Assembly: GCA_024704765.1 (NCBI GenBank)
Contig: JAKMXF010000298.1
Span: 372,001 to 436,000, forward strand
Direction of reading: 5' to 3'
Length of the DNA stretch: 64,000 bases
DNA from: Oopsacas minuta
Lineage: Eukaryota > Animalia > Porifera
In this document: positions 2,592 through 59,354 of the stretch, in pieces
Layout: every line of letters begins with the position of its first letter
How positions within the stretch are numbered: the stretch's first letter is position 1
Position numbers and translations under genes: made by a program
The notes under the pieces: model-generated
Told to the model about the DNA's origin: nothing
Databases searched by the model: none
Seen by the model: only the letters and a program-made list of their open reading frames with translations

Positions 2592-3835
2592 TTGTACGAA
2601 CTGAGTAATATCAAGCAAGGTATATTTTTAGAAGTTAAGACCCCTGTTAATGAGAAACTTGTTTCAGCGCCACATAATGTCTATTCAAGCATGCAGCATT
2701 TCATTATTATTATCTCATTATTCATGACGTTATCATAATACAAGTGGTCAATTCATGGAAATTTCAATGAGTTTACTTCGAAATATGTAAATTAAGCGTG
2801 TTTATGCCGGTCTGTGAAGATAAATCACTAATTTTTACTCGTTTGCAAGTAAATACATAGTGTGTTTGTGTAGTTGAATTACATGAGAAAATTATGAAAT
2901 AATGACAATATTTGTGCTGCAAGTGAACTTGATCCGGGCGGCTAGACAAGTTTGCAACTGATTGTGGCCTAAAATTAAATTTTTTCTGTTTATGTTGAAT
3001 CTTACATAAACTATCTCAGTATATTTAAATTTACGTCATCTCATGTTAGCTATCAAATGTTTTCATTATTACTTTTCAAGCTTATTTGTATTCACAAATT
3101 GAAAATTAAATATCCCAGAAAATCGTATGTTTGTTCTTTAAATACTAACCGCGTTTCGGATGTTTTAATGTAGGAATAATTCGAGTGGGATTTTATTTAT
3201 TTACATCATTTCTGCTCAAAATATACGTACAACTTATATAATTCAATTGAAAATTATATTTTAAACTTGACACAAAAAAGTATACAATTAAAGAAGCTTT
3301 ATAGCTATTTATATATCAAGGGAGCCTAGTGTATTTTAATTGAGGGTTAATTACATAACGATTGTACATACTAATTTTAATTTTTATGGAATAATGTAAT
3401 CTGTTGAAATATTTCACTAAATACGGTATAAAGTCAGGCGCGGCACATCCATTCGAAAATGGTACAGCGACTCCGCACTAGTTAATATGTTACAGTGGGA
3501 ATCATACTTACAAACTGTCTATACAATGTGTGTACAGATATATACGTAGATACAAAAATAATGAAATTATTAACGCATTGTCTATTTTCGAAGAGCTAAG
3601 GCTTAGATAGCGGAGCTAGCAATCGAAAAAGTGGTACTGCGCTCGCCGCACCAGCCGTATCGAGTACGCAGCCCCTCTTTTACTCTACTAGTTGTTCAAT
3701 TTATTGGCTATCACTTGGTTAATGTACACCTCATCTTCATTAATTTTATGGAGGAAGGATACATAAAACAACCAATGGTTCAAACTGGCTAACCTTAGAG
3801 CAGATTTCTCTGTATATAGTTACTCAATCTATATA

Positions 3836-4181: not shown

Positions 4182-7100
4182 TTACACACTTTCAATAGAA
4201 GAATTATCAGCTAGTAAAATAGGTTGTAACCGCATTGGTTTACTGCTTTCTAATTTAACACTCCTCCCACAGAATACAGTAGTACTAAGATTATCCATAC
4301 AAGTTCCATGGTAAATCTCACTGGCTACAAAATCTCTCTCAGTGCGACTGGCTGATATTTTAGCACGTTGACGTTCTTTGGCATCACGTAGTGCTATATA
4401 GTTAGAAGTTCTCTCTAGATACTCGTCGAATTCTGCTTGTTTCATCTGTTCCATTAGATGATCACTGTGTATTGTTTGGTAGTAATACTGTTCTTCTTGT
4501 AAAGCGTCTTGATTACGAATCTCGAACAGATCTGTTTGCATTTTCAATATCTAATTGAGTTAGAACATATTACATCATATTACCTCATATTTATCTAAGG
4601 TATAAAGTATACCCTCTTTAATATGCAAGGGGCCGTAGAAATCATATCCAGAGTTTCGAATTAATGAAAGTCCACATCTAATTATTTGTATGTAAATATC
4701 AAAATCATATATACATACATTATACGTAAATCAGCTTAATGTAATTTTGCTTTTTCAGAACTTGTTATAACTCAAGTTCTGTCCATATACTTCCTACTGT
4801 GTAATCCATCATTTTCGGCGAAATTTTGTAGCAACAATCCAACAAAAATCATATGCAGTGCAACCTCTATAATTGGGGAACCTGGGGTAATTTTGGTCCA
4901 CCTTCATTCCTTCCCATAGATTCGAACCTCTATATGTGGTGAGTGGGGAATGAACATACTTTAGAGGAAGTTATGCTCCACACCATTGAAATTTACCTCT
5001 ATATGTAGGGGAATTCACGAAAATTTTTCTTGAATTTTGTAGTAAATTTGAAAAAAACCGTATTTATCGCTATGATGAATTGAATTTTGGGTTTCTCAGA
5101 AGAAAATTTCTTCCAAATTTGTATATTCAACCAACAACCTTAAGGCATATAATAATAATAAAATATCATTGGGAAAACAGTCTATTTCTGTGGTAGGATA
5201 TTTTTCAATACAAACCTGTTCACACTTAATCTTGTGTATACTGAGTATTTCTGCTATACCTTCCCTATCATACGCTACAGGTCTGGTACCTTCACTCTCC
5301 AGCTCACTAGCTATCTCACGCCAAATTTCCCCAGTCTTAATATCCATATACCTCTCTATTAACACAATAGTAGCTCTATCCTCTACAGATATACTATCAG
5401 GCACAGACCGGAAGTCTAATCTACTACATAATGAGTAAATCTTAGCTCGCATATTATCTGCTACATCCATGACACATAGACTGTGTAGAGGTTGTTCAGG
5501 CTGTTCTCGCATTTCTCGTTGTAGACCTGTTGTTAATGCCTCGTTAACATCTGCTATAATAATGCCATCCTTCCGAGCAACATTAAGAGCTGATTCCTCT
5601 CTACGCCAGAGCTCAGCTAGTAACGACCAAATCCCTAAAGAACATACCAATCAATAATACTTTGATATATTTCTCAATCTTTTAAATATTTTTTCAAATG
5701 TCATCTAAATACTAATTCTACAGTCAACTCGCGTTATATCGAAGCTCAAGAGACCGCGACTAAGTCTGAAATTGTACAAATGTGTTCCCAAACCGTAAAA
5801 GTAACATACTTTTATCTGTTATATCGAAGAAAATTATCGCGGTCCCTTCAGGTTTGATAAAACGGGAGTTCAGTGTATTAAGCCAATTAACCATGCTAAA
5901 CCTATTAAATATTCAAATGCATTACTCACCAACAGCAGTGTCATTTCTCCCTAAACTCTTGCTAGACAGCTGTAACGTATCTGACATAGATTCAGATCCT
6001 CTCTGGAGTGTATCAATCTTCTGCTTACCTCCCTCCCTAGCCTGCCATGCTTGTAGATGTGGAATACATCTAGCATCATCAGATAGATCAACTAATACTC
6101 CTAGAATAACACTCTTCATAGATATAGGATGTGTTAATAGACAGTCTACTAATACAAATACTCCTTCTTGCATTAGAAATAATTCCTCATTAGCACTACA
6201 TCCTACTACACATGTCCATATAGCATCTAGTGCGTGTAGAAACAACTTATGGTGTCCGAGACCAGCTGAGAATAGGCTGTCTGATATTAATAAGTAATTA
6301 GTGAGAACTTGAATACCTCCTAACAATGTACAGAATTCGTATGTAATAAAGTATGAAATTAATATAGGAAATGGTTGATAATACCAATATACTGATACGT
6401 GTATTGATGAAAATCACATAAATACAAGAATGTACAAGTACTTACCGATATTCCCTAGCAGTTCTTTAGCTCTATCATCAGCTTCACATAACAAACTAAT
6501 CAGCAATAGAGTATCACTCATGGTATCAATATCTAAACCATCTGTACTAGTGGGATCCATAGCATCTAGGAAGGATATCAAGAGAGATAAAACACCAAGG
6601 TCCAATAGTTCTTGATTTAACTGCTCATGTTGGTGACTAGATACGTTAAGTAAGGCTCTGAGACAGAGGAATAACTGAGCTCTCTTGCTACCTCTACTAC
6701 CAGGCTGTGATAATATAGATGTACCTATTGGCAGGTCAGAATTATAAATCATTCATAAATACAGCAGTATTCACCTATTACCAAATTGATTTGATAGAAT
6801 TCCATAGTGGTTGTTTTTCACAATAATACAATGTACAAACAGCTGACAGTTCCTCTAATAGTAAGACAAATAAGTCTGCAAATTATAGATTTATTGCAAA
6901 ATTTCGCAGAATCGCGGTGACGTACTGACATCACACATCGTTACATGGTGCAACAATTTTGCCTAGAAAATTCATACACGATGCAACTGTTGCATCGTGG
7001 TTGGTGGGCTTTAGAATCCTAGCGACAAGTATACATCCGATAAACATAGCTGCCATTGATTAACACCTTACCATAGCTCATATGATCATCCTCACACAGA

Positions 7101-54346: not shown

Positions 54347-54413
54347 AGATTCAAATAAGATCAAACAAATAATAACAATAAAGTTTCTATTATTTCCATC
54401 ATATAATGAACCA
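54347..54413 (-). promoter_or_regulatory. SECIS element of SelL copy 1
   Basis: Minus strand: tggttca-ttat-ATGA-t-ggaaataatag-AAA-ctttattg-ttattattt(g)tt-t-GAT-cttatt-tgaatct. Helix I ggttca/tgaatc, GA quartet, 11-bp helix II with one bulge, AAA 12 nt after ATGA. Confidence 0.88.
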
Positions 54414-54422
54414 ATATAAAAG

Positions 54423-55034
54423 TTATAATTTACTTTTGAGCTCAGTGTTGACTACATGAATCAGCTGATCAACAACTGGTCTATCATCAGGTCTCTCACA
54501 ACGATAAAGATAAACAATCCGTCCTTCTTTGTCAACAAGAGCATCTCCCCCTAATTGAGTTACTTCCTCATCACTACGCGGTTTTCGTATCGAGTGACCT
54601 TGAAGCGATTTCTGTAAATACCACCACAATGTCCACGCATGCCAACTCTTATATGTTGAATTAGCGAATCCAAACGCCTTATAAATAGACGTATTGTGAG
54701 TGATAAATAAGGGAAAATTAACGTTTGTGTATTTCAGCCAGTTTATCGCAGTCTCTCTGTCGTAAATAGCTAACAGGACAATATTAAGCTTATCTAGCAA
54801 ATCTTGAGAATTAGATAGCTCTTGTACATGTAGTTGTCATGGAAGTCAATTGGAATGTCTCAAGAAAACGAATAGAGTATGTTTTGAAAATTTTCCAATT
54901 TCGTCATGTCCTTTAGAAATGTCTAGTAAAGAAATAGAATTTCCATTCTGACAATCTGTGACGCGTATAGAGGGTTGTAAAGTGTCTCCAATGTTGAGAG
55001 GAGGGATCAGAGTGTCAGGATACTGTTCAGCCAT
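54423..55034 (-). CDS. SELENOL: Selenoprotein L-like (AhpC/TSA, Prx-like Trx fold) with two Sec residues (ULPU), single exon, 203 aa
   Basis: One continuous frame: LFVFLRHSN-TGA(54846-48)-CTT-CCA-TGA(54837-39)-QLHVQEL...QLGGDALVDKEG...ERPDDRP, ending at TAA. It joins the two ORF-track fragments 54846-55034 and 54423-54800. SECIS immediately downstream. Confidence 0.92.
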
Positions 55035-55709: not shown

Positions 55710-55900
55710 ATGGCAGAAGCTGAAAAGAAGTCTGCCACAAAGATAATGATAGGAGATAAAGCTCCCTTATCAAAGTTTCTCTGAGATTTTGAATTCGTCT
55801 CTCTTCCACAAATTTGTGCGAAGAATGACTCAAAGAAAACACTATTTGTGTTCTTACGTCATCATAAATGAGGCTTTTGATAAGAGTATATACTTGAGTT
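55710..55900 (+). pseudogene. 5'-only truncated SelL-like pseudogene retaining a UGFU motif
   Basis: MAEAEKKSATKIMIGDKAPLSKFL*...DSKKTLFVFLRHHK-TGA(55869)-GGC-TTT-TGA(55878)-TAA. Premature TGA at 55782 aligns with AGA in the paralog. A 9-nt deletion is present and homology is lost after ~55900. Upstream ~55435-55710 resembles ~56478-56754. Confidence 0.85.
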
Positions 55901-56753
55901 GGAAAGTATTTGTTTGTCCACTTTGTATTATAATGATAGGGGAAGATGATCTGCGTACATAATATAGGGACTAACATATCCTTCTGGTGACGATATAGGA
56001 AAAGTAAACAATTACATTAGGATTAGCGAGTATGCTGATTCCGATTTTCTTTCGAGTTAATCCTATGCAAATATATTTGTTGTTTCATGAATATAAAGTA
56101 AAATATAAAGTCCCATGCAAACACAAGTGTTCGCAAGTCGAGCAGCGCGAGAAAGCGAAGCGGCTCGTGTAGTAAGAAAATACGATGAAATTGGAATTTT
56201 AATATAAATAATTCACACAATATAGATATGGAAACTGAGCTGGACTAAACCGAAAGCAATTTCGAATAAAGAGACTGTTTTGAATAGTCCAATCCTGAAG
56301 GAAAATTCGAAATTGGCGAGTATTGTAAGAGCTGAAGTAAAGGTGACAGTTATAAATTTTGCTGGTGATTATTGGCCATAATTAGTAATTTTATGAAAAA
56401 ATTACCAAAATAATTATTAGTTATATAACTCGAACATACAGTGAATCTTGCAGAGTAACTACAGGAATAGAATTCAAGGTCTGGTGAAATCTATTAATTT
56501 GAAGATTATCATGCGTTTATCTGTTATAATCTACAGCTTTGTAAAGTATACAGAGGGGATTGGAAAATTCGCGTATAAACCAGTCAAGTATAGCTTTCAT
56601 CTTTATAAATCAAATAACACATCACATTAATATGAATAGGGACTTTGCTATAATACCGCATATACACGTATATAAAATATTAGAGTGTACACTTTTCATG
56701 AAAATATAATCTGGATATATCGATATACAATTTACCGAAATTCCACACAATAA

Positions 56754-57323
56754 ATGGCAGAAGCATATGAAAATAAGCCTACCTCTCGGATAATGATAGG
56801 AGACCAAGCTCCCTTATCAATGTATTTAAGAGAAATTGAAAACGGAGAACTTATCTCTATTCCACAAATTTGTGCAAAGGATAACTCCAAAAGCACTCTG
56901 TTTGTATTCTTACGTCATTTCAATTGTATGTTTAGCAGAGAACATATACGTGAGTTGGAAAATACTCCCGCAATACTAGACCAACTTAACGTAGTGATTG
57001 TCTCAAATTTCGAGAAAGATGCAATTAAAGAATGGAAGCAGAAAGTCAACACAACTCTACCCATGTATATGGACCCAGAATTAGACCTGTACAAAATAAT
57101 GGGCTTTTCAGAGACAGCAAATACGAAAGCTAAGACTTTTTTCAAGGCAATTATACTGTCAATGAAAACTCGTTCAATTCCACAGAGATCTGGGAGAGAT
57201 ACACCAGGTCATTTGGGTGGAAATATGATTGTGGACAAGGAAGGAAAGGTAACATATCTTTATAGAAGCGAGAGTCCTGACGATAGACCACTTCCTTATG
57301 ACATATTGAAATCGCTCAGATAA
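56754..57323 (+). CDS. SelL-like paralog without Sec: CxxS (CMFS) active site, 189 aa
   Basis: LFVFLRHFN-C(TGT 56925)-M-F-S(AGC 56934)-REH aligns with the UxxU of its neighbours. HLGGNMIVDKEG...RSESPDDRP. No in-frame TGA; stop is TAA. Confidence 0.92.
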   Translation: MAEAYENKPTSRIMIGDQAPLSMYLREIENGELISIPQICAKDNSKSTLFVFLRHFNCMFSREHIRELENTPAILDQLNVVIVSNFEKDAIKEWKQKVNTTLPMYMDPELDLYKIMGFSETANTKAKTFFKAIILSMKTRSIPQRSGRDTPGHLGGNMIVDKEGKVTYLYRSESPDDRPLPYDILKSLR

Positions 57324-57370
57324 TTCAAATTTGCTGATAAATCGGGAGGATGTAATGTAAGAATTGGTGA

Positions 57371-57434
57371 ACTCAATAGTGATGTGAATAATATAAACAT
57401 TTATTTATTGATATTATTTGCTGATTTGTAGAGT
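57371..57434 (+). promoter_or_regulatory. Retained (fossil) SECIS-like element with GUGA core, downstream of the Sec-free CMFS paralog
   Basis: actc-aata-GTGA-t-gtgaataatat-AAA-catttatttattg-atattatttgc-t-GAT-ttgta-gagt. Helix I actc/gagt, fully paired 11-bp helix II (WC/GU). Sequence visibly homologous to the SECIS at 57819-57883. Confidence 0.8.
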
Positions 57435-57818
57435 GAGACAATTAAATAAATTCTCTGAATTTTCCAATTATGCAAATTTCTTCAGCTGGGCTTTTCCGAA
57501 ACTTGTTTTAAACAGTCAATTCTGCAAAATTTGGAGGCTTGTATTCAGGAAATATGTCCCGAACAAAGAAAGGTCCCGACAACGGAATGTTATAGCCGCA
57601 ATTTAGGATATAATACATTCTGCATGTGTGACCAATTGTGTTTGGCTAGCTGAGATATACTATTATTGCTAGAGTACTGTTCAATTCAAAGTTTGAACAC
57701 ACTTAAGAATTATAAGGTCAATTCATAGAAATTAACGCAATTTAGAGAAAATTTCCTTTAATAACGTAACATCTAATAAAACGCACATAACAATTGAGAG
57801 AAGAAATAATAACTGGCT

Positions 57819-57883
57819 TGACTCTATAAATCAGTGAAGAATATCAATGATTTGTTTCTATACTTCACTTCATAGACGAGTCT
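57819..57883 (-). promoter_or_regulatory. SECIS element (form 2) of SelL copy 4
   Basis: Minus strand: agactc-gtct-ATGA-a-gtgaagtatag-AAA-caa(atca)ttg-atattcttcac-t-GAT-ttata-gagtca. Helix I gactc/gagtc, helix II, AAA bulge and apical mini-stem caa/ttg. Confidence 0.9.
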
Positions 57884-57926
57884 TACACAACTCTTATATC
57901 TAATCCCAATTCTAATCGAAATTCAA

Positions 57927-58503
57927 TTACTTGAGTGTTGATAATAAATTCACAACAAAGCTAATCGTTGGTCTATCATCTGGACTTTCGCTTCTGTGGA
58001 GATACAGAATCTTCCCTTCCTTGTTCGCGATCATATCCCCACCCAATTGAGTTGACAGGTTTCCAGGGTTAGATTGAAGTTCGCGACGTTTAAAAATCAA
58101 TCGAATACTTTTCAATACAGTTTTGACACCAATATTAGCTCTGGGGTGATAACCCAGTAATTTATAGGTTTCTGATTTCGCGTCAATATACATTGGGAGG
58201 TTACTATTTAAATGACGTAACCATCCCTTTGCTGCCTCTGGCTCGTAAAACGAGACAAGCACGATATTGAGTTGATCAACAATAGCTGGAGTACTGCTCA
58301 ACTCTTCTACGTGCTGTTGTCAGAAAGGTCAAACGAGATGACGTAAGAATACAAATAGTATTCTTAGAGTCATCCAACGCACAAATCTGTGAAATTGAGA
58401 TGTTTTCTCCGCTCTTCAAATCCATCATAGTAATAGCTGACGGGAGAATATCTCCTACGTTTATATTGGGGACTGAGTCAATCTTTGAATTGCCCTCAGC
58501 CAT
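57927..58503 (-). CDS. SELENOL: SelL-like selenoprotein with UPFU motif, interrupted by an apparent 2-nt deletion at ~58359 (pseudogene or assembly error)
   Basis: Frame 1 gives MAEGNSK...LDDSKN. After the shift: LFVFLRHLV-TGA(58329-31)-CCT-TTC-TGA(58320-22)-QQHVEELSSTPAIVDQLN...QLGGDMIANKEG...RSESPDDRP-TAA. Paralogs read AAG AAA ACA CTA TTT GTG; this copy reads AAG AAT A CTA TTT GTA. Confidence 0.8.
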
Positions 58504-59354
58504 CAGAAATAATAATTATACAAATCTATACAAACATACACATATTTATACTTAGTAGTATCAATTATGGGTCATTTAAGTTAGTAATTATATTTCAAGT
58601 CTACTCACTTATCAATTACGTATAGTATCTAACGTTCTACAGATTTATGCATATAGTTAAGTTGGTTTCGCATAATTGTGTCACTTTCGTTCTAGGAACG
58701 TGACACAATAAGATTGTCCAAATAATTAATCTATTTTAACACGCATTCGAGTGTTGTCTAGTGTATTTAACATGTGGTAAAGATGTAAGGCTTGCAAATT
58801 ACTTCATGGGCTACAAGTAAGTTGCCCCTCCGGGGTGCTCTACTTTAAGGGATAGGTTATTATGCGACAGTATACTATGAGCTAGGATATATTATACCCT
58901 GGGATAATTAAGCATCAGTACGAGTTGACTCATCAACAATCATAGATGTACAAGTTATCAAACCTCAAATTGGAAGATTATCCAAGATAAATCACAGATT
59001 CTCACGCTACGCATACTTTACTATTTCAATGTACATACACGGAAAATATTGTATATAACTTGGAATTCCACGTTTCATAATGCTGAAACATATAAGGCTA
59101 AAACTATATGTATAAACATTTCATAACTGTAAATTTATATCAGTTTTCGTACCAACGAAGTTCTATTGTACGAAATTTCTTATTATATACAATAAGTAAA
59201 CTCTTGTCAAAATATTCAGTGAACATAAAAGTTCGGCGAATGTTTTCCGGAGTTAGAGTACACTTTAATTAGGACGTAATACTCTATCTACCATATGGAA
59301 TTCACAAAGATTAACAACTATGATGTTACAACTAATTAGAATCCATAGAGCAGT

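Follow-up and report, generated by a model that had tools for sequence, protein, structure and literature searches.

The window analysed here is a 64,000-nt stretch of the Oopsacas minuta genome (contig JAKMXF010000298.1, assembly GCA_024704765.1). Between 54.3 and 58.5 kb, one gene family is present in four intronless copies, designated A, B, C and D. Copy A (54423–55034, minus strand) is, in its read-through translation, an intact SelL gene with the redox motif U-L-P-U, where U stands for Sec. Its SECIS element, at 54348–54412 on the same strand, has an AUGA core and scores 20.4 bits with Rfam. Copy B is a pseudogene (55710–55907, plus strand), recognised by tblastn, codon view and repeat depth as a truncated, C-like duplicate. 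It is the copy most similar to C, with 77% nucleotide identity and an alignable upstream region, and it has two premature stops, yet it has kept TGA GGC TTT TGA at 55869–55880. A high-copy repeat (55909–56168) abuts and truncates it; contig depth over the repeat is about 50–100 times that of its flanks in all runs and in both organisms compared below.

Copy D (57927–58503, minus strand) translates as a U-P-F-U gene that is frameshifted in this assembly. Two nucleotides are lost at 58357, directly after codon 49 (..SKNT|LFVF..), and in a second organism, B (run X5), a GT inserted behind 58357 puts copy D in frame with its U-P-F-U motif. The SECIS of copy D (57820–57882, minus strand) has an AUGA core and scores 37.9 bits with Rfam SECIS_1, for which the gathering score is 35. 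In DNA runs from the source sample, organism A, contig depth over the interval 57467–58700 falls from about 104–131 to about 15 (run X1) at 57496–57500, and the major-depth contigs extend past 57500 but no longer resemble the assembly there. The assembled copy D therefore appears to be that of a minor haplotype or to reflect a structural variant.

Copy C (56754–57323, plus strand) is a SelL-type (AhpC-TSA_2) gene with an intact ORF of 189 codons, the motif C-M-F-S and a TAA stop. It matches Pfam AhpC-TSA_2 at 9e-8 (32.9 bits, cut-off 27) and NCBIfam SelL_rel_redox at 7e-25 with 87.6 bits, which is below the 120-bit cut-off of that bacterial model. The names of the homologue clusters found for distant relatives provide a single label, 'peroxiredoxin'. 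By homology, the family of copy C is selenoprotein L-like. SelL is a Prx-like protein with two Sec in a UxxU motif and a single SECIS (PMC3316567, PMC3473315). Copy C has the Prx-like thioredoxin-fold domain of the SelL type, an AhpC-TSA_2/SelL-related fold, and its orthologues and paralogues encode UxxU with one SECIS in the 3'UTR. Unlike SelL, however, copy C itself is CxxS rather than a UxxU encoded by two UGA codons; it has no Sec and is a Cys-form homologue rather than a selenoprotein. The hexactinellid genes also differ from SelL in being intronless, in standing in tandem as three to four copies, and in occurring as UxxU, UxxC and CxxS variants.

The codons TGT ATG TTT AGC at 56925–56936 of copy C encode Cys and Ser at the former Sec positions. 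TGT (56925–56927) and AGC (56934–56936) align exactly with the TGA..TGA of the paralogues and orthologues, where the motif is U-x-x-U. UxxU is encoded in copies A and D and in the orthologues on contigs L002, L005, L007 and L011, and copy C is the sole member of the family found to lack Sec altogether. The ORF list and the translation of 56754–57323 contain no in-frame TGA, in agreement with the initial annotation, which had described a CMFS gene lacking in-frame UGA and ending in TAA. A hidden Sec codon elsewhere in copy C was considered and is ruled out by the TAA stop and the zero count of in-frame TGA. The initial annotation also called for the TGT and AGC codons to be confirmed in reads. 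Logan contigs from three organism A DNA runs, which are probably the assembly's own data, match 55992–57496 with zero differences, and the two codons are therefore not assembly slips. The FLRH, LGG and PDDRP motifs of the family are retained in copy C.

A word-index protein search for copy C returned only the query itself, and the orthologues came from an exhaustive protein search with the same query. The matches in that search were C-terminal fragments, as is typical of selenoprotein genes that gene callers have cut at UGA. The contigs carrying them, from other assemblies and from sponge metagenomes, are syntenic arrays in which the SelL copies come after a presenilin-type peptidase (A22B). 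From this synteny, the source assemblies are taken to be related glass sponges. When read through TGA, the A-type genes encode ULPU everywhere, the D-type genes UPFU or UPFC, and the C-type genes UFLU (L002, L007/L010, L011) or UMFU (L005). The nearest orthologue of copy C is an intact U-F-L-U gene at L002 3761–4348, followed by a SECIS with a GUGA core. In a maximum-likelihood tree copy C is the sister of this gene with support of 100/99, and the two terminal branches are about equal (0.44 for copy C, 0.42 for the L002 gene).

The orthologous arrays have further variants of their own. D-type genes with U-P-F-C or U-P-Y-C, in which the second Sec has become Cys, are found at L002 6119–5543, L004 4728–5309 and L006 3844–4368, and partial Sec loss, as read from these motifs, is a repeated event within the SelL family of these sponges. 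L004 has a fourth type of paralogue, U-N-P-U, at 2988–3572. Past the TGA stop of that gene, at L004 3580–3647, the family SECIS model gives a weak match of 15 bits with no clear 5' core. In L011 (position 1743 onward), the C-type U-F-L-U gene runs into a stop where seven G stand in a row and goes on in a different frame, the result of either a sequencing error in the homopolymer or a frameshift of recent origin. On L012, a 1.2-kb metagenome scaffold, a gene at 214–816 combines a C-type N-terminus (U-F-L-U) with a D-type C-terminal end and is followed by a D-type SECIS at 842–910; the hybrid arose by gene conversion or unequal crossing-over among the copies, unless the assembly itself is chimeric.

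The SECIS of copy C lies at 57371–57434 on the plus strand and begins 48 nt after the TAA. It is separated from the stop codon by a spacer (57324–57370) that belongs to the predicted 3'UTR. In the minimum free energy fold, helix I is formed by ACUC and GAGU (57371–57374 and 57431–57434), and helix II by 11 base pairs with all positions paired (57384–57394 and 57411–57421). The core has the expected NUGA/NGAN form, with GUGA (57379–57382) opposite UGAU (57422–57425), and both halves line up with those of the 13 other SECIS in the family alignment. The apical loop of 16 nt (57395–57410) starts with AAA at 57395–57397, which supplies the unpaired AA expected on its 5' side; these three positions are invariant columns in the family alignment of 14 elements. 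The first poly(A)-signal hexamers past the stop, ATTAAA at 57441 and AATAAA at 57445 (57441–57450), were found by pattern scan as candidate signals 7–11 nt beyond the element. Copy C is presumably expressed, with the SECIS inside its transcript.

In the alignment the element corresponds, column by column, to the SECIS of copy D and to 12 more from the family. Across the 14 aligned elements helix II is 96.4% paired, and three of its pairs have changed on both sides. The covariation score of the helix was reached by none of 500 shuffles, and copy C keeps all of the pairs. The initial annotation had placed a SECIS with a fully paired helix II, AAA and helix I 48 nt downstream of the gene, and had regarded it as homologous to that of copy D (its 'copy 4'); the fold and the alignment bear this out.

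The covariance model R1 was trained on A- and D-type SECIS only, with no C-type element included. The element of copy C (57371–57434) scores 53.7 bits out of sample with this model (E about 2e-9 over 103 kb), next to 56.4 bits for the C-type element of L002 and 61.4 bits for that of L005, both from two-Sec genes, and 54.4 bits for the in-sample element of copy A. Rfam SECIS_1 (RF00031) does not match the copy C element at E ≤ 10, and the gathering score is not reached; a scan of the whole window at the Rfam gathering thresholds found nothing. SECIS_1 also misses the elements of the intact two-Sec C-type genes of L002 and L005, of the D-type gene of L004 and of three A-type genes, so the miss in copy C is uninformative and was dropped as an argument against the element. 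Rfam SECIS_1 is insensitive for these AT-rich SECIS. The folding z-score of the copy C element, taken alone, is unremarkable (−1.0), and a bacterial promoter and terminator scan is uninformative for a eukaryote. Taken together, fold, alignment and model score indicate that the hairpin is a genuine eukaryotic SECIS derived from a UxxU selenoprotein L ancestor. The ORF, being without TGA, offers it no in-frame UGA to recode in its own mRNA.

The initial annotation treated the GTGA of this core as a deviation from ATGA. This is misleading, since GUGA is shared by the intact two-Sec UFLU gene of L002 and by L011 (the gene with the frame broken at the G run), and is reported as the majority form in the sponge Amphimedon, in 12 of 21 SECIS including Aq.SelL (Jiang et al., PMC3473315). 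Among the other C-type SECIS, those of L007/L010 and L005 have an AUGA core, and the A-type U-L-P-U genes have UUGA (L002 2790–2858, L004 1675–1742 and L005 2779–2845, all minus strand). As A, G and U all precede UGA in two-Sec genes, that base is free to vary among SECIS-dependent SelL genes. The comparison indicates that GUGA is the ancestral state of the copy C gene lineage, with no sign of decay. The copy C element resembles the GUGA-type SECIS of sponges and green algae (PMC3473315) in the G before the core UGA and in the unpaired AA of the apical loop, but differs in that the base here may be A, G or U from one orthologue to the next, each of them encoding two Sec.

The copy C and L002 SECIS are nearly identical – 58 of 61 aligned bases are the same, with indels of 3 nt in the loop and 4 nt in helix I. 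The sequence around them is not: the spacers are 45% identical, compared to 48% when shuffled, and the 3'UTR is at shuffle level on both sides of the element. Third codon positions of the two genes are 46% identical and the proteins 55%. Because the element matches so closely amid shuffle-level flanks and diverged third positions, it must have been under purifying selection for nearly all of the time since the L002 split. By core identity to L002, the element of C is better conserved (93%) than those of A (79%) and D (72%). Gene conversion from D or A was considered as a cause of the intact SECIS and rejected, with core identity at 93% to L002 versus 77% to D.

The TGA..TGA retained in pseudogene B fits with the use of Sec by the C lineage after it parted from L002, and the Sec loss in copy C is therefore recent. 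The very recent loss proposed in the initial annotation is well supported by this trace, by the U-F-L-U motif and near-identical SECIS of L002, and by model scores like those of two-Sec SECIS.

Organism B is represented by Logan contigs of run X5, which comes from a different study and is about 95% identical to the window. Copy C and its SECIS are spanned there by one low-depth contig (6.7x) with 4.5% differences and zero gaps; 7 of the 27 differences are not itemised, and we infer that these lie near the contig ends. No organism B difference is listed at the TGT and AGC codons, and the Sec loss therefore seems to predate the split between organisms A and B.

Five differences between organisms A and B fall within the 64-nt SECIS of copy C (7.8%). 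One is at 57378, the unpaired base preceding GUGA; two, at 57386 and 57420, each turn a G·U pair into a Watson-Crick pair; and two, at 57406 and 57410, are in the apical loop. Divergence elsewhere between the two organisms is about 5% at synonymous sites and 8–9% in intergenic or pseudogene sequence, giving a neutral expectation of 3–5.8 changes for a 64-nt SECIS. The long-term rate of the copy C element predicts only 0.3–0.6 changes, and five is well above that (P about 1e-5 to 3e-4); five also marginally exceeds the prediction from the family's fastest working SECIS (P 0.03). A count that is at the neutral level and above the long-term rate points to relaxed constraint on the element. Against this, all five differences spare the core, the AA and the base pairing, an outcome that random placement gives with P of about 0.05, and structural constraint on the element may be persisting. 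These two signals – neutral count and non-disruptive placement – roughly cancel.

The reading we favour, at a probability of about 70%, is that the SECIS of copy C is a fossil, recently orphaned by Sec loss in the Oopsacas lineage and now without a job. The starting point would have been a two-Sec (UxxU) SelL ancestor with a working GUGA-core SECIS. In the Oopsacas lineage both TGA codons would have been replaced, one by TGT (Cys) and the other by AGC (Ser), once the L002 species had split off and the duplication behind pseudogene B had taken place, and apparently before the split from the approximately 95%-identical organism B. The SECIS would now be idle, and presumably functionless, because the copy C mRNA has no UGA to recode, and would still be intact because neutral mutations have had too little time to break its structure.

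The initial annotation also considered that the element is kept for another role, and in this reading purifying selection would still act on the SECIS in a Sec-free mRNA, through SBP2 or L30 binding for stability, localisation or translation, or through selenium-responsive control of a Cys backup. The structure-preserving placement of all five organism B differences is the one positive signal in its favour, and a weak one; an R1 score like that of working SECIS and a conservation relative to L002 that is higher for the C element than for A and D would also fit it. However, that conservation is accounted for by Sec use until recently, and the placement signal loses more of its weight if a single mismatch is acceptable, as it is in the SECIS of D and A. 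The number of differences fits neutrality, 7.8% between organisms A and B against 3 of 61 over the far deeper split from L002, and a role of this kind is undocumented in the literature searched. We consider it unlikely. The specific case of a structurally perfect SECIS kept by selection on an mRNA with no Sec codon, such as for SBP2-mediated, selenium-dependent control of a Cys backup, is distinctly unlikely; if true, it would mean a recoding-independent role for the element, and a Cys-form backup enzyme beside the Sec paralogues.

Copy C might instead be drifting into a pseudogene after losing its catalytic Sec, with ORF and SECIS both decaying relics. Only 9 non-synonymous and 4 synonymous changes separate copy C of organisms A and B, for a pN/pS of 0.59 that is indistinguishable from 1. 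The resolving position is Ser and not Cys, and two of the array's four copies are no longer intact. Yet the 189-codon ORF has stayed open in an AT-rich genome with its FLRH, LGG and PDDRP motifs, organism B has neither gaps nor stops in copy C, and the branch of copy C is no longer than that of its Sec orthologue, all of which makes such drift a poor prospect. It is highly improbable that Sec and Cys alleles of copy C coexist in the population, with selection on TGA haplotypes and recombination preserving the SECIS. The source sample does have haplotype structure just downstream, where depth drops about seven-fold at 57500, but there is no variant at 56925–56936 in the three organism A DNA runs at the 10% listing threshold, and none is listed there in organism B.

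Fossil SECIS have been described in the GPx4 of canarypox virus, after a Sec-to-Cys change (PMC1802603), and in degenerate form in the SelK of Drosophila willistoni and D. persimilis (PMC2500217). Canarypox GPx4 and D. willistoni SelK are like copy C in that a gene changed from Sec to Cys keeps the ancestral SECIS, while Sec-encoding orthologues carry the homologous element; by the tree, the L002 orthologue and pseudogene B, copy C is a Sec-free gene from a Sec-encoding ancestor with the same SECIS. It differs from these precedents in that neither Sec of the UxxU motif is left, Cys having replaced the first and Ser the second, and in having intact, frameshifted and truncated paralogues beside it in a tandem array. 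The D. willistoni SelK element is degenerate, whereas that of copy C has no visible degeneration.

Copy C alone reveals no new mechanism. Its potential interest is as an early natural snapshot of Sec-to-Cys conversion, in which the SECIS is indistinguishable from working ones and the controls are at hand, both as paralogues in the same 4-kb array and as Sec-encoding orthologues in related sponges. The array provides a date for the Sec loss and has A, G and U before the UGA core all in use by two-Sec genes of glass sponges. Copy C is also a ready test case for the action of a SECIS on an mRNA with no UGA.

Two further sequences lie between or beside the orthologous genes. In L005, a match to Rfam Hammerhead_3 (48.8 bits, gathering score 48.5) lies at 3726–3779 on the plus strand, in the spacer between two SelL copies. 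In L002, a tandem array with a unit of about 30 nt (..GGTATGGGACAATCCGGTTCACAAAATTTC..) occupies 4500–4700, past the 3'UTR of the C-type gene.
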